A stretch of DNA of 64,000 bases, taken from the NCBI GenBank assembly GCA_965153285.1, contig OZ229122.1; one strand, 5' to 3'. A program made the translations under genes and the position numbers. Source of the stretch: Podarcis tiliguerta (taxonomy: Eukaryota). The notes below the pieces were generated by a model. It was given only the letters and a program-made list of their open reading frames with translations. It had not been told where the DNA came from and did not search any database. Positions 6,289 through 50,017 of the stretch are shown one piece after another; position 1 is the first letter of the stretch, and each line of letters begins with the position of its first letter.

Positions 6289-20871
<14,583 letters not shown>

Positions 20872-35967: not shown

Positions 35968-37816
35968 TTAGATTTGCCCCCACTTGTCTCTGGGGTTAGG
36001 ATAGCACAGGCCAGCTGCACAACATAGCATGGCACAGAGGCAGAGAAGGAAAGCACTGGTCATCAGGAGCCGCTGGCTGCAGAGGGCACGATCCGCCTGA
36101 GAGTGAAAGGAGTGCAACAGTGAATGCCCCTCCCCTTATAATCCAGCTTGCATCCTGAAGAAACCCAGAATCCCCAGGTCCAGATACTGTCACTGCCCAC
36201 CTTCATCTTACCTGATCCAGCATGCTGGACAGGGCAGGATTAGCCTGGTAATGTGGCTGGTAACAAATTCCTGTCTCTTCTTGATGCATGTCCCATTCCT
36301 CTATCGCACATTTAGGTGGTTGTCTGGGGACAAGATGGGAGTATTGCATTAATGGGTTAAGAACTCCTTGAAACTAAATCTCTTGGCTCACCTGGTCTTG
36401 GGGAGAAGGGATGAAGGTGCAGTGATGCTAAGGCAGTTCTCATGGGAGACTGAGTTCGTTATGATAGTCAGGAAGTGGATTGACTCCTGGGCATCTGGAC
36501 CTGTGGTTGGAGTTGATGGAAGGAAAGGTCAAGGGGAGACGGACACGGAACCAGAGTTCCTGAAATCTTTGGGAGGATGTTGCAATTGGTCAGGAGATCA
36601 CTCACCTTTGAGACCCAGTTTTTCCCCAGTGACTGTCAGACCTAGGCGTGTACCATTGGGAGGATCTGTGCCATTGTGGAGGTCAAAGGTCAAGGCAACC
36701 ATGACAGAGACTGTTGTAGGGGTCTCAGCAGTGGTTGTGGAGGGAGCTGGTGTCAAGGCACTTTCCTGCGTCTTATTTGGGATACAGAACATTAAGTGTG
36801 CCAGAGACTTTAGCAGAGAATTCCAGTCCTTAGAGATGAGGGAGGGAAAAGGAATGAGAATTGACTCTTAGTTGATTCTATTCTCTTGATTGCAATTTTT
36901 TCATTTCCTTCTGCCTTTTAAAGTACCTTTCCAATTTCACCCAATCGTGCCTCTAAAAATTCCCTTTTGCTTTTAACAGCTAGAAAATTGAAAGATGGGA
37001 ACTGTATTTTAAAAGTACCATAAAACATCTCAGAACACCCGGATCGTTGAATATTTCAGATATAGCTGCACCTACTAATTTAAAATTTTGTACTGTAGAA
37101 TATCCTATTCTTTTGCTCGCCACTTCTTCTGATAGTAACCATTCAGGACTATCTTTTCAATGACAGCTTCTTATAGCGTATTTGTAAAAACCAGCAACAC
37201 CCAACCATCTGTAATTCATGAATGTTTAGCTTGGGTCATTATGGTATGATAACAGCAGCCAACACAGGCAACACTATTTTTGAGAGCAAATCAATGCAGC
37301 TGTTCAAATTTGGGTAAATCTCTCAAGTCTGTTAGAAAATGGAAATAAATGAAAACAATTGCCAAAAGATAAATCACACAAGTCTGCCTCTACAATGAAC
37401 ACCCAACATACCCGTCACAGCCCAGAATTGTTAGGGACAGTCTGTGCATTCCATCCGAGAAGATACCCAACCATCCTGAAAGTTTCAGTCAGAGAACCAT
37501 TCAGTTGCTGAGCCTAAACAGTTAGTAAGAGACCAAGACGGCAGAGCACCCACCACTGCCTCCTAAAGTCTCTCATGCGTGCTTTACAACCACAACCCAA
37601 TTCCATCCCCAGCATTTTGGTCTGATTTTCTACTTAAGGTGATCATCTCTAGCTCACCTCTTTGACATCGGGATTCTGAACATCATGTGACTGGATGTAG
37701 GCAGCAAAACCAACAAAGGCAACAGCCAACGAAAGGAGGCAAAAGAAGAAGGTGACCAGAGGTGGGTGTCGCTCCAGGCAGACACGCAGGGAGCCCAGCA
37801 GGGAGCAGGTGACCAT
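35968..37816 (-). CDS. TMEM219: TMEM219 (IGFBP-3 receptor), 243 aa, 5 coding exons
   Basis: Exons 37658-37816 (MVTCSLLGSLRVCLERHPPLVTFFFCLLSLAVAFVGFAAYIQSHDVQNPDVKE), 36606-36828 (DWNSLLKSLAHLMFCIPN...GEKLGLKG), 36392-36500, 36212-36323 (QPPKC...) and 35968-36096 (ADRALCSQRLLMTSAFLLCLCAMLCC...QI*). All are GT-AG and in frame. Two-TM TMEM219/TMEM248 architecture, syntenic between KCTD13 and TAOK2. Confidence 0.9.
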
Positions 37817-40800
37817 GGTCAGCCCTAGGAATGAGGGTAAGAAGGTTGCAGTGTCATCCCAGCACTAGAAGAAGCTGAAACGTCTGCTGGAACAGCCAGA
37901 ATCAAGGGAAACGAAAAGGCTGGCAGTCTGCTACCTAGTCCCCTTTGCATTTTGTGTGGTACAATCACGAGCTTTGCTTTATTAAATAAATAAATTTTAA
38001 AAAGTCAAATCGTGTCCTAGAAATGTGAATGGAAGATACTCATTCAATCTCATAAATTGCTCAGAGATTATTTAAATATTTAGTGTGCATGCGGTCTGGT
38101 TGTCTAAACTTACTGAAAATAAAGTGGGAATTGGTTTCCTTGAGATTGCCCCTGCCTCAAGATCGCCACGTAAATGGAAAGGTGATATACTGCAACTTTG
38201 TATTCATTTTTTATGTGCTTTCCAAAAATACCTGAAGACATTTTGTTTCAACAAACATTTCCATCTGGATGAAAAGGTCTCCATCTTGTCTTGCTTTTAA
38301 AAGTATGTTAGTTGCTTATATTGTGATTCAGATTGAGACATGGGAAAGGCAATTCAAAAATTAATAAAATGAATATATTTTGACTGTGGGGTGTTTTTAG
38401 ACAAGTAACCACTGCCCATGTGTATCTTGACATAGTAAGGCTCTCAGGGAGGACTGCACTACATACACCTCATTGTTTAAATTAGCTGTAAATCTATGCA
38501 TGGGGGGGGGGGACTTAGAAGTGCCAACTTCTGAAGTTAGCAACCACTAGATTCTTGATCATCGCAACTGGCTGGATGACTGCTTGTATGAAAGAATGTC
38601 GTACTCAAGGATATACAGGTACTTGACAGGTTTTCCTACTTCTCTATATTTCTGATGAAGGTGGCAAATTTCAACACAGTTACGGTAAGTTGGAAAGAAA
38701 GAGCTGGAATTATAGGTGAAAGTCGGATATTTGCAACCCAGAGTTGCTTCATCTGCTCCACCCAACATGGCAATCTCATCATTGCCAAGTCTTCTCGCAG
38801 TGTGGTGTTATTTGTTGGGGATGAGGAAGGGGAAAAACTTTATAAGGAGGTTATTTTTAACAATCTCTGTCAAATCTTAAAATATAATGTGCCACATGAT
38901 GTACTGTTGTTGATCACATTGTTTTTCCTTTGTTTAAATAAAGTTTTTTTTTAAAAAAAGGAATATGGGGATGCTGATCTTTGTGTGTGTCCTCAAAATT
39001 CAACAAAAGAGAGAACCCCCCACAAAATGAATAAGCAGCATAAACTGAACACCACATTTGTTTGATTTCTTAAGTTTTGTTACATAAGGCTTCCCTCCTT
39101 TGAGTCTTCTGGTCTTGTGAGACAGTTTCTCCCCATATTTCTCAAGAACTGCATGTGAATGCGTAGTTTCATGGTAGACTTGTTTTGTGCTGTATATCCC
39201 ACAAATGTTGGTGTGTTTACATCACACAAACAACTTGCTAGCAGTTACTGCAGTGAACTGCTAGCAAGATCATTGTTCAGCATGTGATTGATCTCCTGTA
39301 CCTGGGAATGTCACCTGCAGGGAACTGTATGTGAGGACAGGGCTCAGATCCTGCTTGCAGACGTCCGACAGGCTAGGCATTTGGCTGGCTACTATGACAA
39401 CTGGATGGGCCATTGGCCTGATCCAGGAGACCCTTCATACATTCTTAACATACAGATTAGCCCTTGCCTATGCCCACACGATCATCATGAGCACCTTTTA
39501 AGTCCACAAATGGTTCCCTGCCACACTGCAAGATGTGGTGATGGGCACTAGCATATATGGATTAAACACACTTTCATGGAGAATGAATGTGTTTTACCAT
39601 TAGCTGTTAATCATGACAAGTGGAACCTGCAACAAAAAGTTGTAGTATGGAGGCTCCTATTTGGAATTCCTGCCAGCCAGCCATGCCCTTTCCCTGGATA
39701 TTCCATTTTCCCTCCTCCTGCTTGTCCATTCCTCCCTCCATTCAACTGAGAGTCAATTTTCTATAGCCACTGAGCATGTTCAGTTCTTCCTGAATAACTC
39801 TTCCATGTGCACTCATCACGCACTTTTAGCTGCACAAGGATCCACACTTGGGAGAATGAATTTGCTATTAGTGTAAGGGAAGTCTACATACAAACTCCAA
39901 ATTTAAGACATAGCATGCCTGATAATACTGTCACTAGGGAGTAATAACACGTGACAGCTATTGCTTCTATGCCTGTTTATGAGCTTCCCAGAAGTGTATA
40001 CTTTACCACTGTAGGAAAGGGGATACCAGACTAGATGGACCTTTCGCCTGATTCAGCAAAGCTGTTGATGTTCTCCAACACTGAAAGTTCTGCTAATGCC
40101 ATTTTGTCTGGTGATCCTCACAACCAACTTCTCCAACACCCTCCTAAGTGTCCCAAGGTAACTGCTAAATACAGAACAATCAACTTATACACTTTCAAAA
40201 ATAGAGTGCTGGACAACTGAGGGACACTTAGTCCTTTTTGATTTCTCACATCCCACTATGATCCACATAGCAGCCACCATGTCCTCAAAAGGCTAAGACA
40301 ATCTCCTTCCCCCCACCCCACTGTTTCATATCCACCTCCTAGCATCTTTCTTCTAAATCGCAGATTAAATGAAAAGGCATTGGCTGGAGGAGAGTTTAAG
40401 GCCGCCTAGAAGCCCTGATCTTAGATATGTATTGCTTGATTGAGATTGTGGTGCTGCTGGGGAGCAATAGTTGTGGTTTTTCTGGATTGCTTCTTATATT
40501 ACACAACACACAGGAGGCACGTCCTCTGTAAGAAACAACACGGTAAGCACATAAAGATTATCACATGTGGCAAGTACCCTCTTCAAAGCCTGTTTATGCA
40601 GCAACAATTCTACATATGCGATTGTTGCCCACCATTTTCTAATGTGGTTTGTACATTTCCAGCACTTGTAACAGGGGAAGTAGCCTTCAGTGGTGAGGGA
40701 GAGGATTGTCTCCAGTGGTAGCTGTACTCAGAACAGACCCAAAGAACTGAATGGACAAGACTACTGTATCTAAGGTTCAATACTCCTTTAGAGTAGAACT

Positions 40801-41000: not shown

Positions 41001-41398
41001 TTATTATTTATACCCCGCCCATCTGGCTGGGTTTCCCCAGCCACCCTGGGCAGCTTCCAACAAAGTATTAAAATACAGTGGTCTGTTAAACATTAAAAGC
41101 TTCCCTAAACAGGGCTGCCTTCAGATGTCTTCTAAAAGTCTGATACTTGTTGTTCTCTTTGACATCTGGTGGGAGGGCGTTCCATAGGGCGGGCGCCACT
41201 ACCGAGAAGGCCCTCTGCCTGGTTCCCTGTAACTTGGCTTCTCGCAGTGAGGGAACCGCCAGAAGGCCCTCAGAGCTGGACCTCAGTGTCTGGGCTGAAC
41301 GATGGGGGTGGAGACGCTCCTTCAGGTATACTCGACCGAGGCTGTTTAGGGCTTTAAAGGTCAGCACCAACACTTTGAATTGTGCTCGGAAACGTACT
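40967..41398 (-). mobile_element. L2 LINE 3' fragment with adjacent (AAT)n microsatellite tail
   Basis: ORF2 C-terminus FRAQFKVLVLTFKALN...RAFSVVAPALWNALP...FRRHLKAALF; (AAT)n at about 40967-41000. Confidence 0.88.
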
Positions 41399-42648
41399 GT
41401 TTCCGAACACATGCTACAGTTTTTGCTTAAAGCCATTTTGTTAAAATGATCCTACTAACTGTTCAACGTTGTAGTTGTGGCAAATGGCACGTAATTGTCA
41501 AAAGCTACTTTCTACACATTCTGTGTGTCTGCACAATATTGCATTGTGAAAGAAAGGATCAGCAGAACATGTCTGCAACCAAAGTACACTGGTTACTGCT
41601 TTGCACTATCGCTTCAGGAGTCTCCCCTTGAAGACCATCCCTAGCAATTAGCAAACAGGGCATTAAGCACAATGACCATCATCATGAATGCATTTATTCT
41701 TTGTTTGGCTTCCCTGTCAATTGAAAAAAATATACTTTCCTAGAAAAATCTTAAATATGGAAGGACAAGTGTTTCTGTTGTTTCCTTTCGTAAAACAGCT
41801 CAGTGATTTATTAATTTTTAAGAGCAGGAGTGAACCATGAGTGCGGGTGCTTCCTCTCTCTTCTCACGCGCCCCATAGGAGGGGAAGATTCCCAGTTTGT
41901 TAAATCAGCTCCACTTGACATCTGAACTGAGAAACAGTGGTTTCAATGTTACTGACATTTCTGGTTTGCAAGCCAGGATAAAACCATGTCTGCCCAGATA
42001 TGGAAAGTGGGAGTTATCAGATGCATTCAGACACTCATATCTTATTAGTAATATCTTATTAGACTTATTAGAAAAATGCATAAGCTTTCCCCCCCTGAAC
42101 ACAGCCTCTTCACTTCCCCCTGAAAGCTGCAATTAAACCAGTTAAGCCAGCAGTGTAGATTTCCCTTAAAAAATAGCCATTTTTGCAATTTTGCAAAAAA
42201 AAAATAACAAAAAAAAATACCACAACTTAGTGTTTTCACTTTTTGAAATATGGCAACCCTACCAAACCAGGAAATTATGATTAGAAGATTCCTGGTTTTA
42301 GTGTGAAGAAAAGTATTGTTCGTATCTTAGCTTAATCAGACTGTCTAAACTTTTTCATTATGTGGATCCATGGTTACTGGTTCATATAAATCTCATGTCA
42401 GCCATTCCGCTTGAAATCCATGTGTTTCATCTTAAAAATCCCTGGGTCTCCAGATGAACCCGCAACACTGAAAGAGCTTTTGGATGACACCCAGAAGACG
42501 ATACCTTCATGTAGCAAAGTAGAATAAAACCTGCATTTCGTATTGGAGAGGCTGGAGTAGCAGGCATCTTCATGATCTTTGTTGATTTCCCCCCACTAGC
42601 ATCTGGATACTGGACTAGCCAACTGAAACATCTTGAAATATTTCTGGG

Positions 42649-42803
42649 CATAGCTGTCAACCTTCCCTTTTTTTGCGGGAAACTCCCTTATTCCAGCGCT
42701 GTTTCCCGCTGCTATTCCGGATTGTTAGATATCCTGTAGACTGTCCCCGGGACAGGTGAGGCTGCTGATCCCTTATTTTCAAATCTGAAAGTTGACAGCT
42801 ATG
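42649..42803. mobile_element. 155-bp hAT MITE with perfect 8-bp TSD
   Basis: TIR CATAGCTGTCAAC(C/T)TTC at both ends; TSD TTTCTGGG at 42641-42648 and 42804-42811. Confidence 0.93.
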
Positions 42804-43145
42804 TTTCTGGGTGAACCTGATAGGATTACACAGAAAGTCCCAGAGTTCAGTAAGACGTAGTCCCAGGTAAGTGTGCATAGGATTGCAACCAGTGTACTTT
42901 CTAAAAGGCTAGAAAATTTGTCCGTGAACTTCCATTTTCATTAGGCAGGTATACCATGTCATTTTGTTAATGTTTTAGAGATAGAGTGGTAGTTATATAA
43001 ATCCCTTTTAAGAAAAACTGTTCACTCTTCTGTTTTACACCATCATTGGTTCAAGTCCCACTCTATGCTTTTGGAAAACAATTACCTTTAAAAAAATCCC
43101 ATCTCTTAGAAAATATAGCAGCAGGCCACTCAAAATCATAGCCTT

Positions 43146-43151
43146 TTTATT
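43146..43151 (-). terminator. AATAAA poly(A) signal downstream of the Harbinger-derived ORF
   Basis: tttatt on the plus strand, 126 nt after the TAA at 43277. Confidence 0.55.
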
Positions 43152-43276
43152 TGACATGTAGAAAACTACCACACAGCAGGCGTCAGCAATACAGGGTCTG
43201 CATACTACAACCAGGTCATACACACCCATGAAATTACATGGACAAATGCGCCTGCTTTGTTTCCCCCCACCCCACT

Positions 43277-44632
43277 TTACACAGGGTTCTTTTCAAAATA
43301 GGAGCAATAAGCAGCCCTGATCTGGCAAGCTCTCTTGGTCAGTCCAGCCTCTGACAAGGGCACCCTTGGCCTGGCTGAAGCATTCTGGCTGTCAGCCACT
43401 GCAGGGCTTTCCAACGGCTCCAGCAACTCATCCCCTTTGATCTCGCAGATATTGTGCAGGATACAGCAGGTGGCTATGACCACAGGAATGAGCTTCTCCC
43501 TCACATCCAGCCTCATCTGCAGGCACCTCCAGCGAGCTCTCAGGACCCCAAAAGCTCTCTCCACGCACACGCGGCACTTGGCGAGCATCTCGTTGAATTT
43601 CTCCTGGGCCCCGGTTTTTGGCGCTGGGTACGGCTTCATGAGCCAGGGGCGAAGCGGATAGGCGGGATCCCCTATTATGATAGGGGTCATCGAAACGCCT
43701 TCCAGCACCGTTGGCGCCTGTGGCCCAAAAGTGCCTTCGTCCATACTGTTGAAGAACGGAGAGTTGTGCAAGATGCGGGAGTCGTGGGACCTCTCCGGGA
43801 AGCCGACGTAGATATCGGTGAAGCGGGATTTGCTGTCCACCAGGGCCTGCAGCACCATAGAATAGAAACCCTTGCAATTAATGTAGGAGTCGGCAGAGAA
43901 GGGGGGGCAGAGGATGGAGATGTGGATTGCGTCGATTGCACCGAGGCAATTGGGGAAACCTATCTCCTTGAAGCCCTCAATGATCTCCTGCGGGTCTCCC
44001 AGCTTAATGATTTGGGCCAGCAGCCTGCTGTTTATTTCCTCGCACACTTCTTCAAATATCGAGCAGGCTGACGAAATCCCCACCCCGAAGAGCTCCGACA
44101 CGGTCTTGTAGCTGTCGTGGTGGGCCAGCTTCCAGATAGTCATGGCGACTCTTTTCTCCACCGGGATGTGAGACCGCATGCCCGTGTCCCGGCGCTGCAG
44201 GGCAGGGCGCAGCTCCTCGGCGATGTACATCAGCGTGGACCGCGACATCCTGAACAAGGAAATCCAGCACTTGTCGTCCTGCTCGGAGTTGATCATCCGC
44301 TCCCACCATTCGCTGCACCTCGGAAGCATCCAGTGGGAGCGCTCAGACAAGGCCATCAGCTCGTGCTCGTAGTGCAGCGCGGGGGAAGACGAGTACACCA
44401 TGGTGACCACGGAGACGATGGCGTTCCGGTGAAGCCGCAGCAGGGCTCTCTTGCGGCGGACGCTGGCCGAGAGGATGCGCCTCAGCACCGCGGCCGACCT
44501 GCGGAAGCGCCTCCTCTGCAGAATCCTCGCTATGGCGAAAATCACCGTGCGCCTGTTGAGCATCCATTGCTGCACCAGCAACTGGGAGGTTTGGACGCAG
44601 GCAGCAACCAGAGCCAGGCACTCCTGCTCCAT
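43277..44632 (-). CDS. PIF/Harbinger transposase-derived nuclease (HARBI1/ALP1-like, DDE_Tnp_4 type), 451 aa, single exon, nested in TMEM219 intron 1
   Basis: Uninterrupted ORF with Harbinger motifs FRMSR, VEKRVAMTIWKLA, FGVG (HTH), GFPNCLGAIDAIH (D234), SMVLQALVD, SHD (D284), IIGDPAYPL (D322), WLMKPY, RVCVERAFGVLRARWRCL (E358) and CCILHNIC. CpG- and GC3-rich. No flanking TIRs or Myb/SANT ORF seen. Confidence 0.92.
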   Translation of the reverse strand: MEQECLALVAACVQTSQLLVQQWMLNRRTVIFAIARILQRRRFRRSAAVLRRILSASVRRKRALLRLHRNAIVSVVTMVYSSSPALHYEHELMALSERSHWMLPRCSEWWERMINSEQDDKCWISLFRMSRSTLMYIAEELRPALQRRDTGMRSHIPVEKRVAMTIWKLAHHDSYKTVSELFGVGISSACSIFEEVCEEINSRLLAQIIKLGDPQEIIEGFKEIGFPNCLGAIDAIHISILCPPFSADSYINCKGFYSMVLQALVDSKSRFTDIYVGFPERSHDSRILHNSPFFNSMDEGTFGPQAPTVLEGVSMTPIIIGDPAYPLRPWLMKPYPAPKTGAQEKFNEMLAKCRVCVERAFGVLRARWRCLQMRLDVREKLIPVVIATCCILHNICEIKGDELLEPLESPAVADSQNASARPRVPLSEAGLTKRACQIRAAYCSYFEKNPV

Positions 44633-46332
44633 TGATCCGGCCGCTCTGGAAGAAGCTTGCAGAAGGCTCGGGAGGAAGTGGCGCGAAGGCGCTACGAGAA
44701 AAACCTTCCCCTTGCTACACCCTTAGCCAAGGCAGGGATGATGTCGCTGGGCAGGGACGAGACATCACCAGTCCTTGTGCTTCAGCCGGAAAGGTGCTGT
44801 TGAGCTGAAGGGCAATATATTGTAACAGAATCATATTTGTATTTCAACCGTGAAGGCCTTTTCTAAACAGCAAAATAGATTGAGCGTAAGAAATTTATTC
44901 CACCATACTTGGGAAAGGTCCAATCTCTGCCCATTCTACATTCCAAAATTCATAAAGGTTTCAGAGTTGCCTATGGCTCTGTTCTGTCTTCCCCATCCCA
45001 GCTTCCCTCCAGTGCCCATAAATAGTCTTCCAGCTAACCACCCCTCAATGACATTGCTATATTACTCCCATAGTGTTCGTCTTACATCAACCCACACCCA
45101 CCTCCAGTAACTGCCTACTCTCTGAAGCTAGGACTTTATCTCAAAACTGGTCAACCACCTGATATCTGATTTGTAACTTAATTGGCTTCAGAGGTTCAGC
45201 ATCCCTGCTTGTTTCAGGTGTGCTAAGCCCAACAGGAGTTACTCAGCAGTGATGGGAAAGCGCTCTATACACGCTCAGAGGCAATTAGGCTGAGTCTTGA
45301 AAATCAGGTTCTGAGGTAAATCCTGTGAGATTTAAAATCTTACCACTTTTCCAGAGTTCCACCTCTGCTCAAGTTAGTGAGACAGCTGTATTTTATTTCC
45401 CCCCAAATATTCCATTTGAACCATGACTACAGCGAAATGAGCAGTTTTAAATCCTCTTTTCTGTGAAATGAGCAGAATGCTAATGTGTTCTCAATGGTTA
45501 AAGCTCACGGAATCAGAGCAGTTCTGTTGGCCTACTGACCCAAATAATTCAGTTCAGTTGCTCTTCCACCATCCTTAGCAAAACGCCCAGAAGTCATTTA
45601 ATGCCCAGCTTTGACTTACTACAAAAACAATGAAGAACACTGGGAACTGATCTACATTGTTCTCTGCTACAATAACTCCCCCCCACACCCTCCTTCCACA
45701 GGAAATATTGATTTTTCTCATGCAACACAGTTTTCTGTGTGTCCTCAGTACATTAGGGCTGCAACCCTGTGCATCTTTGCTTGGAAGCAAATCGCACTGA
45801 ACTCAGTGGTACTTACTTTTAAATAATAACATGGTTAGGGCTGGATGTAAACCACATAGCTAGAGAGCTTTGGGACCCCATTACTGATAGAGGTACCAGC
45901 TTCAATGGCAGCCTGGGTTCCTATGTACAAGCCACTGTATCTTCTAAATACTTATTTGAAAGGCAGAAGAGCCCTTCATTTAATCTGATCATCATCCCAT
46001 ACTCAGTTGCCAAAGACAATGAAGAGAAGAAAGAACAGTGACTGGGCATAGGGAAGAGGGGAAGGGTGGCCAAGATAGTGGCATGGAAAGACAGATAGTC
46101 TGGAGACAGAAAGTGGTTTGGTTTAAACTCTAACAAAGGATCTACTGGGAAACTCCTTAGCCATCCCATCCGTCCCTATTTTCTAGGTGTGGCCCTGCCT
46201 TTGGGAATTTGTTACCAAAATCACGTTAGCAATCACATACTAGAGCTCTCATTCTCCAGTATTCATCTCTCACACACAAACACACACAGTTAAATCTATA
46301 GGTGTGTTTCATCTCAAGTGCACCTACGTGTG

Positions 46333-46468
46333 CAGGCATCCCCAAACTTGGCCCTCCAGATGTTTTGGGACTACAATCCCCACTATCCCTGACCACTGCT
46401 CCTGTTAGCTAGGGATGATGGGAGTTGTAGTCCCGAAACAGCTGGCGGGCCGAGTTTGGGGGTGCCTG
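46333..46468. mobile_element. Palindromic hAT MITE of about 135 bp (ggactacaactccc family)
   Basis: TIRs CAGGCATCCCCAAACT / AGTTTGGGGGTGCCTG; TSD TACGTGTG / CACATGTG. Related older copies at about 4335-4450, 14464-14590, 22054-22190, 53553-53650, 54940-55070 and 58730-58870. Confidence 0.85.
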
Positions 46469-48288
46469 CACATGTGGATGCACGGAGACTAATGTGCAAT
46501 GGGAGCACACAGCCTGCTAACATTACAAACTGTAGAGACATCTTTTGTCCTGTTAATAACAGTACCTCATATTCCTAGACTGCTTTCAAGTGCTCACAGT
46601 AGTTCACATGCATCATCCAGTTGTAAGCCTGTAAATCAGTATTATCCCCAATATGGCAACAGGGGTGAGGTTGAGGGAGAATTGCTTCCCCAAGGCACCT
46701 TGTGAGCTCAGGGCAGAGGTAAGATCCAAACCAGTCCTGACTTCTGACTCATAGCTCAGTCTCTCAGGCACTACGCTACACCAGCTTTCTCTTAATAAAT
46801 TACTGAGGGGACAATTGTGATTTAAAAAACAACAACTCTGGGTGGAATTCTGGCTAGTGCTAAGGAGATTGTTCCATCAAGCAAGCAGCAGACAGAACAA
46901 TTTCTGTTCTGGGGGTTCTCATGACCCTTCAGAGCAGATTTGGGAGAGGTGTAAGGTGGGTGAAGCCCCATTAGGCTAGTAGGAGTCTTTGTGCTGGCGT
47001 CTGCTAATGAAATAGGATCACTGAATCCTGCCCTATCTTTACGAAAACTGCCTACTCAGCTATTGAGTCTGGGGAGGGAAGGCCAAAAGGCAGCATGCCA
47101 TGTGCAAACCGGAGCCCCTTTGCCAGATGAGAACTAGTCTGCACGGCTTACTGTTATTTCATGGCTCAGTGGTAGCATTCAAAACAGGTTCCCGGCAGGT
47201 TAAGCTCCCAGCTCAAAATAAGCTTTTGGGTTAGAGAGAAATATGAGTAAGCACATGTGAAGATGATTAGTGTGGTACAGCAGTGTGTTATTCGTTTAAT
47301 ACACAATATCCCACCTTTCTTCCAAGGAGCTCAAAGAGGCATACATAGCTGTCCCTGCATTTTATCTTCACAACAACCCTGTGGGTGAGGTAAGGCTGAA
47401 AGATAGTGACTGACCACCCTGTGAGCTTCAGAGTTGAATGGGGATTTGGATCTTGGGTCTCCCTGGTCCTAGTCTGGCACATCACCCGCAGCACCACAGG
47501 AATTGGGTTAGGAGATCCAAGGACAAACTTTCTTAATTGCAAAAGTCCATCAAGCATGGTGATGTGGCTGACTGACTTCCATAGTGACAAGAAGAGCACT
47601 GAAAACCAGGACTGCTTGCTAAGAAGTGCTTTAGGAATAATTAATGAGAATGGAGAAATGCAGTATTTCACACGGAAGGTAGACATAGAACTTCTTTTTC
47701 AGCTGTGCACTGAGAGAAAAAAATGCATTCACTTGTAAATAGTCTAGGCTCCAGAAATATGGGAGTGTATTAATCTCTCTCAACGTATGCACACAAGGTT
47801 GCAATTCTATGTATGCTTACTAAGAAATAAGCTCCACTGTGGCACTGACTCACTTCTGGGCATATATATGCAAAGGATTGCGGCGTGTATAGGATACCAA
47901 TTGAGACTTTCCCTGACTGAGAGGTGCCATCGTTCAGAGGCAAAGTCAATACTTTGCATTCAGAAAATGCAAGTTCAGCCTCTGGCCATGCAGCTAGAAG
48001 CGTTCAGCTTGAGAAAGACCCTGGAGAGCAGCTGCCAGACAGAGTAAACAATACAAGATGAACCAATGGGCTGACGGTGTGAGGCAGCAAACGAGGGGGG
48101 AAAAAACCCTATTTTATCCCCCAAGGGGCTACATTCTTCGAAACCTAAATCCTTGCGTATTTTGTTCCAAAAGCCAACCTAATAGCTGAACAAAAGGATT
48201 TAGATGAGAATAACCAGATGGAGAACAGACCCAGGGGGAAGAAATGCAAGAATGGCACACAGTTAAGAAAGGTGCAACCTTATCTTAC

Positions 48289-48620
48289 CTCCGTCCTGTT
48301 CTCCACTGCCATCCAGGCTGGCGCTCAGGCGACTTCCCCTTTTACTCGAGGATTCTGTCCCTTTAAGAGGCAGCTGCGCACACCCATTTCCTAACTCCTG
48401 CAAAGGAATCCTATCAGGTATTACTCTCGCGCGCAGGCGCAGGCGAGACTCCTCCGCGCCACTCTCCATCCGCGGGCGAATGGGCGCTTTGGAATGACGC
48501 GCAGGCGCGCACGCGTCCCGCGCTGCCCTCCCGCCATAGAAACAGTGCCGCTCCCTACACTGTAAATCACGTCATCGACTTAGGCCTCGGAAGGGAGGAG
48601 GCCGCGCGCCTTCCCGTATA
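48289..48620 (-). promoter_or_regulatory. CpG-island promoter and first exon for TMEM219, probably also for the nested Harbinger-derived gene
   Basis: CpG-rich 48420-48620 with NRF1-like GCGCAGGCGC repeats and TCACGTCA. Strong donor GAG|GTAAGA at 48289/48288. It is the only promoter-like CpG island between the NUFIP2-like 3' end and TMEM219 exon 2. Confidence 0.72.
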
Positions 48621-50017
48621 ACGGCTGCTTGGGACCATAGAGGAGAGTCTTCCGAAGAGTATAGAGCTACCACAACTACTGGAAGCTTTGAGAGCCATTT
48701 TGGTCAAGGGCAAATAGTACTTATTTATAGATCATTAATATATTGTATCGTCAAAAACGGTTTTAGCTACATTTAGGTCGACTCTTATGAAATATTCACC
48801 TTTTAAAAGAGGCAAACCAACAAAGAACGCATTTTCTCCTCCCTCTCCCCCAGTGCAGGTCAGGAACAGTAAGTTATATGGCTCATTTTTTGTTACTTGT
48901 CTACTTGTGTTTTTAAGCGCAGAAAAGAGTAACTGCAAAGCAACCCAGGCTCAGGTTTGTATAAAAGGAGGCTCAGGTTCAAATAAGCAAGCAATTCAGA
49001 CCGTGCGATGTTTACTTGGACCTATCCCACTGATTTTAATACCATTTCGGGGGGAGATTGGGCTCATAGCTTTCTGTATTTTTCTACAAAGCAGCTGGGC
49101 TAAGAAAATGTTTTGCCCCGTGAAGGCTATCAACACTGCACTCTTACCCAACAGGACACAGATGGCTCCTTCCTTTTGCTTTCATGATAAATTGTGGTGG
49201 GGATTTATTTCACACACTTCCTCATTACCACTGCAACTAAGCATCTTTACTGAGAAGCCCCATTGTGCTCTGTAGGCTTTCCTCTTCAGTAAATTGGCCG
49301 CATCAGTTCACTGGCTTTTAAGATGGCAATCTTATTTTTTAAAGTGAGGAGCTTTTTTACAGTGGCAACCAGCTTAGAAGCTCAGCACATGAGAATAGAA
49401 ATAAAGAGTATTGAACCATTAATTAGCATTTAGGTAAACTAGCACTGTACATCTAAAAGATACCTAGAAGTAAAGTTATGCTTAGCGTAATCTCATCACT
49501 ATGCTGGCAGAAGACGCACTCAGCAAATATTTTATTTCTATTAAATCAAGTTGAGCAAGTCACATAATTTCAGTAGAAATCACCCCTGCCTTCTTTAAGA
49601 CATCTTCTGAAAACTGTTTATAGACAGGCCTTCACATTTCTTTGTGGTAACTAGTATTTACTGATGTTTTTAATGATGCCTTTGGTTTTATCTTGTATGT
49701 TGCATACCACCTTGTCAATACTTATGAGAATGCAGCTTATAAATTCTTCAGTGGATAAACAAATAAAACTATTTCTTAGCCATATATTAATAGTTCCTTG
49801 TGGTAAACTTCCCAAAGCTTCTCCTTTGTGCTTTCAAAAATCATGTTTTTCACGTTTTTCCATCTCTATCCCTTAAAATAATTTCCCTCCCAAACCATTT
49901 TCAGTGCCTTGAGCCACATCACTACCTACCCCATGCTGGTAACACACCTGTGTAGCGATGAATAATGAGACACTGACAAGGCAAGAGAAGTGAATTTAAA
50001 TAAATTCTTTTTTTGCC

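Follow-up and report, generated by a model that had tools for sequence, protein, structure and literature searches.

The transposase-derived gene and its host locus

We describe here a gene derived from a PIF/Harbinger transposase, which lies within the first intron of TMEM219 in Podarcis tiliguerta (GenBank assembly GCA_965153285.1, contig OZ229122.1). It is contained in a stretch of 64,000 nucleotides (nt) that was analysed as a whole and is referred to below as the window. An earlier reading of this DNA, made from the letters alone, had pointed out an uninterrupted open reading frame (ORF) of 451 codons nested in TMEM219 intron 1. Both the frame and its location are borne out by our analysis: the ORF begins with an ATG and occupies 43277..44632 on the minus strand, the coding exons of TMEM219 follow downstream on the same strand, and a splice joint connects the ORF to an exon upstream. 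The features of the locus are the following.

48289..48436 (5' end approximate), minus strand: non-coding exon 1 with a CpG-island promoter, presumably shared with TMEM219; contigs of runs X14 and X15, donor follows 48289.
44805..48288, minus strand: intron between exon 1 and the transposase exon, 3484 nt, GT..AG; contig joint in three runs.
44633..44804, minus strand: 5' untranslated region (UTR) of the transposase-derived terminal exon, with an upstream ORF (uORF) of 16 codons; acceptor AG at 44806-44805.
43277..44632, minus strand: coding sequence of the very probably domesticated PIF/Harbinger transposase (451 aa + stop); ORF, Pfam, alignment, structure model.
43130..43276, minus strand: 3' UTR with AATAAA at 43152-43147; sequence, with a contig of run X1 aligning to 43152; cleavage site estimated.
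37658..37824, minus strand: TMEM219 exon 2, the first coding exon, with the ATG at 37816-37814; Pfam, boundaries predicted from splice motifs.
36601..36867, minus strand: open segment holding TMEM219 exon 3; Pfam.

The host gene was recognized by two matches to the Pfam family TMEM219 (PF14940), at 37652-37864 (E 6.9e-13, profile positions 1-44) and at 36601-36867 (E 6.9e-10, profile positions 42-130). Both are on the strand of the ORF and downstream of it; the ORF therefore precedes the first coding exon of TMEM219 and reads in the same direction. The host intron 1, at 48288-37825, encloses the transposase exon, and the region of exon 1 (48289-48650) has a GC content of 0.61 and an observed/expected CpG ratio (CpG o/e) of 1.03.

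The same arrangement is indicated in other squamates by two kinds of annotation. In NCBI, the orthologues of at least eight of the listed species (Notechis, Vipera, Crotalus, Candoia, Podarcis, Pogona, Heteronotia and Rhineura) carry names of the type "IGFBP-3 receptor (TMEM219) isoform X1", while some orthologues are called "putative nuclease HARBI1" and one "protein ALP1-like". Furthermore, a gene model of Phrynosoma platyrhinos (P0135, 388 aa) joins residues 31-106 of the ORF (95% identity) to TMEM219 exon 2 (85%) and exon 3 (72%), from which it follows that the order and strand are common to an iguanian, and that conservation is higher in the nested gene than in its host. Absence from the orthologous site in related lizards, which the sequence-only reading had listed as evidence that would speak against domestication, is thus contradicted by the IGFBP-3R names and the Phrynosoma model. 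As a protein, P0135 is surely a mis-splice or an annotation artefact: the fusion runs through a cryptic GT at codon 106 and the TMEM219 5' UTR is translated as well. Automated screens would mistake such a model for a host-transposase fusion.

Transcript structure

Logan contigs from four RNA-like sequencing runs (X1, X13, X14 and X15), corresponding to four related organisms, were placed on positions 42900-48800. They reveal that in related lacertids the gene is spliced and transcribed as a two-exon mRNA, whose protein begins at the ATG at 44632. Contigs of X1, X13 and X14 contain a joint from 48289 to 44804, which skips 3484 nt and reads CT..AC on the plus strand, i.e. GT..AG on the minus strand; a canonical joint of this kind argues for RNA as the source of the contigs, without proving it. 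The exon-1 contigs of X14 (48289-48418) and X15 (48288-48436) end at the donor, a 1.7-kb contig of X1 spans 43152-44804 unbroken, and each run provides one transcript form in its contigs. A contig of X15 extends from the ORF past the acceptor to 44894 without splicing and may represent a retained intron or pre-mRNA, or else a second, proximal start site. The absence of transcription, another finding that would have counted against domestication, is contradicted by the spliced contigs from three related species. The span originally given for the gene, 43146-44700, has to be corrected, as the exon starts at 44804. Its own polyadenylation (poly(A)) signal was correctly identified: AATAAA is found on the minus strand at 43152-43147, and one contig ends there.

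The transcript leaves no room for a host-transposase fusion protein. An in-frame stop codon at 44725-44723 precedes the ATG, the stop-to-stop frame opens at 44722, and the upstream ATGs found when exon 1 and the terminal exon are read together start only short out-of-frame uORFs. Exon 1 is therefore non-coding and no host residues are fused to the transposase, the stop being located between the acceptor at 44804 and the ATG at 44632. An alternative acceptor near ~44692, by which exon 1 would be in frame with the ORF, was considered and rejected, since the contigs put the acceptor at 44804 and the in-frame stop comes after it. Exon 1 is probably also spliced onward to TMEM219 exon 2, as suggested by the NCBI models in which the transposase protein figures among the TMEM219 isoforms and by the exon-1 contigs that end exactly at the donor.

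Domain composition and predicted structure of the protein

The catalytic domain, the aligned D-D-E triad and the RNase-H-like fold of the PIF/Harbinger superfamily are all present in the 451-aa protein, which belongs to this superfamily. The Pfam family DDE_Tnp_4 (PF13359) matches residues 233-394 with E 9e-29 over the complete profile (positions 1-158 of 158), and Plant_tran (PF04827) matches the same protein with E 9e-16. In an alignment of 50 homologues, D234 is present in 50/50 sequences, D322 in 46/50 and E358 in 41/50. The protein can be divided as follows.

Residues 1-95: basic amphipathic helix.
Residues ~109-224: helical region, including the putative helix-turn-helix (HTH).
Residues ~229-400: DDE RNase-H-like core with D234, D322 and E358.

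With respect to the protein, the sequence-only reading holds up well. The nuclease residues D234, D284, D322 and E358 are found at the positions it had given, and both motifs that it had likened to nuclear localization signals (NLS) are there in a basic N-terminus: RRRFRR at residues 40-45 and RRKR at residues 59-62. In this region residues 5-88 comprise 16 Arg/Lys and no Asp/Glu, and residues 37-72 are strongly amphipathic. As to the proposed HTH, helices are predicted across residues 131-208, and the Pfam HTH_Tnp_4 match is weak and remains below the threshold (E 0.0012, 18.9 bits vs. a cut-off of 27 bits).

The AlphaFold2 model, built with the 50-sequence alignment, has a predicted local distance difference test (pLDDT) score of 82.6. 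It comprises a long single helix at residues 3-82, a helical part at 109-224 and a mixed alpha/beta core at 229-400. Among 48,161 PDB representatives searched with VIA-align, the top matches of residues 119-407 are the piggyBac transposase (Z 9.9, 237 residues aligned), Tn5 (Z 9.4) and Tn4430 TnpA (Z 8.2). Foldseek matches against the PDB are weak (best E 6.6e-3), the top hits being all DDE transposases or integrases, and a sequence search of the PDB with the protein gave no match. The protein atlas returned nothing beyond the name of the family. The structural matches of the N-terminal helix are generic coiled coils only and hence uninformative.

The ORF stands out from its surroundings in composition. 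Its G+C content at third codon positions (GC3) is 0.78 and its CpG o/e 0.71, whereas the CpG o/e of the intron flanks is 0.18-0.30. This enrichment had been noticed before and confirmed here, but not the accompanying claim that it resembles that of the host exons: the TMEM219 exons are clearly poorer in both respects (GC3 0.62 and 0.49, CpG o/e 0.35 and 0.13).

Distribution and phylogeny

A search of 5.8 billion proteins, i.e. of predicted proteins rather than genomes, retrieved as the top match a protein of the king cobra, which is 451 aa long and 94% identical to the query; the next best of the 261 hits has 49% identity. The cluster of the cobra protein at 90% identity has 44 members, and the 15 members listed, all of 451 aa, come from Gekko, Eublepharis, Heteronotia, Podarcis, Lacerta, Anolis sagrei, Pogona, Rhineura, Hemicordylus and six snakes. 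Geckos, lacertids, an anole, an agamid, an amphisbaenian, a cordylid and snakes are thereby covered. The listed orthologues are encoded on one contig each, in different species within the cluster, and the protein from the window is 99% identical to its orthologue in Podarcis muralis.

The 16 aligned orthologues are all 451 aa long, without a single indel, and their pairwise identity is 92.9-99.3%. Only 72 of the 451 columns are variable, with 4 in residues 51-200 and 16 each in residues 201-250 and 301-350, and D234, H237, D284, D322 and E358 are unchanged in 16/16 sequences. Geckos are among the deepest branches of the squamates. The presence of orthologues from geckos through snakes thus places the gene in the ancestor of the crown squamates. 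The history of Squamata is longer than 200 million years (Myr) (PMC10379679).

We found no predicted protein from outside the squamates at 50-90% identity, and residues 1-100 used as a query retrieved only the orthologue cluster and the Phrynosoma model, without any non-squamate protein. Of the two ranges that the sequence-only reading had allowed for a lineage-restricted gene, squamates or sauropsids, the former is supported, as the N-terminal 100 residues are not shared outside squamates. The possibility of a young element with many near-identical copies is countered by one 451-aa orthologue per species in the protein databases and by the drop to at most 49% identity beyond them.

In a tree of 57 proteins, the TMEM219-nested sequences form a clade with a support of 96 in the Shimodaira-Hasegawa-like approximate likelihood ratio test (SH-aLRT), with internal branches of 0.004-0.03 and a stem of 0.30. 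Their nearest relatives are long-branched squamate copies, namely proteins from Eublepharis (320 aa), Anolis carolinensis (442 aa) and Varanus (363 aa) and a Logan protein. Both D322 and E358 are lost in three of these four (two of the named lizards and the Logan protein). The multi-copy families of turtles and the alligator, kiwi and invertebrate sequences are placed elsewhere in the tree.

Two further groups in this tree merit comment. A separate squamate clade of "ALP1-like" Harbinger proteins (P0004-P0014, ~468-515 aa) has 100% support and 79-93% pairwise identity. It includes geckos, Rhineura, Varanus, Thamnophis, Anolis sagrei and agamids in a topology roughly like the species tree. Its iguanian members and a snake have G or D at the position of the catalytic E. 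Judging from these sequences it looks like another conserved domesticated gene, and it may correspond to the Harbinger gene beside the harbiTRIM cluster (PMC12262214) considered below. A kiwi protein with a long branch (P0046, Apteryx mantelli, 639 aa) combines KRAB (PF01352) with DDE_Tnp_4 and is possibly a true host-transposase fusion in a bird.

Purifying selection and loss of transposon hallmarks

The coding sequence is under purifying selection. Compared with the window, the contig of run X1, from a lacertid relative, has 33 differences in 43280-44204, of which 29 are at third codon positions. For codons 143-451, the Nei-Gojobori method counts 27 synonymous and 6 non-synonymous changes (dS 0.14, dN 0.008, omega 0.06). 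The estimate relies on X1, for which the list of differences is apparently complete; the values for X13-X15 (omega 0.06-0.08 among the differences listed) are unreliable. A dN/dS near 1, which the sequence-only reading had named as evidence against domestication, is clearly at variance with the value of ~0.06 in this lacertid comparison.

The hallmarks of a mobile Harbinger element are gone, as had been claimed: neither terminal inverted repeats (TIRs), nor a TWA target site duplication (TSD), nor a Myb/SANT ORF was found around the ORF or in the intron. The best pairs of flanking repeats (14-19 nt, 74-86%) are at chance level, and the best of these (43150-43163 / 44934-44947) is flanked by TTA at one end and by ATT at the other, and hence by no TWA duplication. 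Pfam gave no Myb/SANT match in the 12 open segments scanned in 41089-48571, each of which is at least 83 aa long and one 121 aa. The 3484-nt intron that follows exon 1 harbors, at 46318-46483, a palindromic repeat with two 73-nt arms, 84% complementary, and a 20-nt spacer. Transcriptome contigs stack on it to a summed depth of 10^4-10^5 in all four related species, which indicates a very high-copy, transcribed element, similar to miniature inverted-repeat transposable elements (MITEs) or short interspersed nuclear elements (SINEs). An Rfam scan of 42900-48800 gave no match, the palindromic repeat included.

Relationship to known domesticated Harbinger transposases

The obvious comparison is with HARBI1, which we take to be ~349 aa long and encoded next to ATG13. 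In both cases a PIF/Harbinger transposase with a DDE_Tnp_4 domain has become a single-copy host gene that keeps the triad and lacks TIRs and a Myb gene. However, HARBI1 is located beside ATG13 in jawed vertebrates (PMC9392472), while the squamate gene resides in TMEM219 intron 1, has 451 aa and carries a basic N-terminal helix of ~95 residues without relatives outside the orthologue set. Its nearest relatives in the tree are squamate Harbinger copies, not HARBI1. That it is no orthologue of HARBI1 is judged from locus, length and restriction to squamates rather than from a direct sequence comparison.

Plant ALP1 is not known to have an intact triad. ALP1/ALP2 and HDP1 resemble the squamate gene in that members of the same transposase family were independently turned into nuclear proteins of the host (PMC4671723, PMC7282668, PMC5339849), and they differ from it in that they represent separate events in another kingdom and in that the squamate triad is invariant. 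Drosophila DPLG (PMC9710019) is likewise a lineage-restricted domestication of a PIF transposase under purifying selection. However, these are separate events in an insect with co-domesticated Myb-like pairs, in contrast to the squamate gene, around which no Myb ORF was found.

Within squamates, a 2025 preprint on reptile TRIM genes and the harbiTRIM cluster (PMC12262214) describes an intact, transcribed and "apparently domesticated" Harbinger element of ~200 Myr, which anchors a TRIM/PRY-SPRY cluster in 13 squamates and demonstrates that these animals keep old Harbinger genes. That element resides in a repeat-rich TRIM/PRY-SPRY cluster, as opposed to the TMEM219/NUFIP2-like locus considered here; since the element is published without an accession, the comparison is one of descriptions. 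Among the large ORFs of the window scanned with Pfam none contains a TRIM or SPRY domain, and thus the harbiTRIM Harbinger is most likely a different locus.

As to the transcript, the closest precedent is the capture of transposases described by Cosby et al. (bioRxiv 10.1101/2020.05.07.082677), in which an intronic transposase ORF gains an acceptor and, joined by splicing to a host exon upstream of it, serves as an alternative terminal exon. The difference is that the exon captured by the squamate gene is non-coding, so that its protein is entirely transposase-derived. The main text of that preprint mentions neither Harbinger, nor PIF, nor TMEM219.

Full-text literature searches (TMEM219 with transposase; Harbinger or HARBI1 with squamates, reptiles or domestication) found no paper on this gene. 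As far as we could find, it is annotated under misleading automatic names and has not been described in the literature. In the literature covered by these searches, HARBI1 is treated as the only vertebrate gene that derives from a Harbinger transposase (PMC9392472); the pairing of HARBI1 with NAIF1 (Sinzelle et al. 2008) is cited as summarised there.

Proposed origin and alternative explanations

On the basis of the above results we consider domestication of the transposase very probable. It is nearly as probable that the findings as a whole are best explained by a single-copy squamate host gene that arose from a PIF/Harbinger DDE transposase and uses the TMEM219 promoter. According to this scenario, a Harbinger element would have entered TMEM219 intron 1 before the last common ancestor of living squamates and would then have lost its transposon ends and the Myb-like second gene. 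The CpG-island promoter of TMEM219 would now drive the gene, with the non-coding exon 1 joined either to the 1.7-kb terminal exon (44804 to ~43130), which contains the whole ORF and its own poly(A) signal, or, by the putative second route, to TMEM219 exon 2, so that the two products would share the promoter and the 5' UTR only. The protein combines the D-D-E triad in its RNase-H-like core with a helical region that would bind DNA or a partner and with the arginine-rich N-terminal helix specific to this gene. By analogy, it may be a nuclear DNA-binding protein of the nuclease type, its localization being suggested by the NLS-like RRRFRR and RRKR. It probably works with a Myb/SANT-like partner, as suggested by Harbinger transposition and by the HARBI1-NAIF1 pair. 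We lean slightly towards the retention of metal-dependent nuclease catalysis.

Several points weigh against this scenario. The RNA nature of the four runs is a guess of the tool and is not on record, and the contigs contain no joint that leads from exon 1 into TMEM219 exon 2. Single-copy status is derived from protein listings rather than from a copy count in this genome, and the deep synteny from annotation names and one gene model. The dN/dS estimate is limited to lacertids and to codons 143-451. Since almost all residues are invariant, the conservation of the triad alone does not prove that catalysis is the selected property.

The alternative that survives best is that the protein is domesticated but acts as a non-catalytic scaffold or regulator, like ALP1/ALP2 in Polycomb repressive complex 2 (PRC2), with the DDE residues kept for folding or for binding of metal or DNA. 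We regard this as possible, albeit on the unlikely side. It agrees with the finding that the most conserved part of the protein is its non-catalytic N-terminal half (residues 51-200, with the 4 variable columns mentioned above), with the G or D at the catalytic E in the second conserved squamate clade, which indicates that relatives have been kept without a triad, and with the plant precedents ALP1/ALP2 and HDP1. However, none of the 16 orthologues departs from D234, H237, D284, D322 or E358, in contrast to the closest non-orthologous squamate copies, which have lost D322 and E358.

At the other extreme, the protein could be a squamate-specific DDE nuclease or recombinase with catalytic activity, by which host DNA would be cut or rearranged. 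Such an enzyme might carry out programmed cleavage, or the defence against or control of Harbinger/Tourist-type elements, in analogy to RAG and PGBD5, which likewise arose from transposases. On this view the gene may be expressed in the germ line, given that the exon has kept a CpG o/e of 0.71 while its flanks have decayed to 0.2-0.3, and the unique, acid-free, arginine-rich N-terminal helix might provide the protein with a new localization or partner. We find this reading doubtful.

An origin before the squamates, in a lepidosaur or sauropsid ancestor, with loss or lack of annotation in tuatara, turtles, birds and crocodilians, is improbable. The absence of the gene from these groups does rest on predicted proteins and not on genomes, and related Harbinger proteins do occur in turtles, alligator and kiwi, but the latter belong to other clades of the tree, and no non-squamate protein has 50-90% identity or the N-terminal 100 residues.

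It is much less probable still that the exon was retained as an alternative terminal exon, or poly(A) trap, that tunes the output of TMEM219, with the protein being irrelevant. With exon 1 in common with TMEM219 and a poly(A) signal of its own, use of the terminal exon must indeed compete with the TMEM219 mRNA. However, such a role would not explain a frame of 451 codons that is free of indels over ~200 Myr, the 29 of 33 changes at third positions, or an ORF more conserved than the host coding exons (95% vs. 85% and 72% in the comparison with Phrynosoma).

Finally, a still or recently mobile autonomous Harbinger element, intronic by chance, would account for the intact ORF with the full triad and for the multi-copy related families of turtles and some lizards, but we give it practically no credence, because there is one 451-aa orthologue per species with at least 93% identity over ~200 Myr of divergence, located in the same host gene elsewhere and spliced to a host exon, with a dN/dS of 0.06 and no TIR, TSD or Myb ORF found.

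Other features of the window

Near TMEM219, on the minus strand, the open segment 52034-52864 matches the Pfam family NUFIP2 (E 9.5e-27). The longest ORF in the window, also on the minus strand (6289-8481, 730 aa, ATG-started), matches no Pfam family at E of 0.01 or below.

Implications

If the proposed domestication is correct, the gene nested in TMEM219 would be a second vertebrate gene derived from a Harbinger transposase beside HARBI1, of independent and much younger origin. It would occur only in a clade that comprises more than 11,000 species, with a complete triad and with tighter conservation than its host gene. Its current misnaming as isoform X1 of the IGFBP-3 receptor can mislead comparisons of TMEM219 and expression analyses in reptiles. 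It would also represent a clean natural case of the capture of a promoter and a 5' exon without protein fusion, and it may provide a tractable system for asking whether domesticated Harbinger nucleases still cut DNA.

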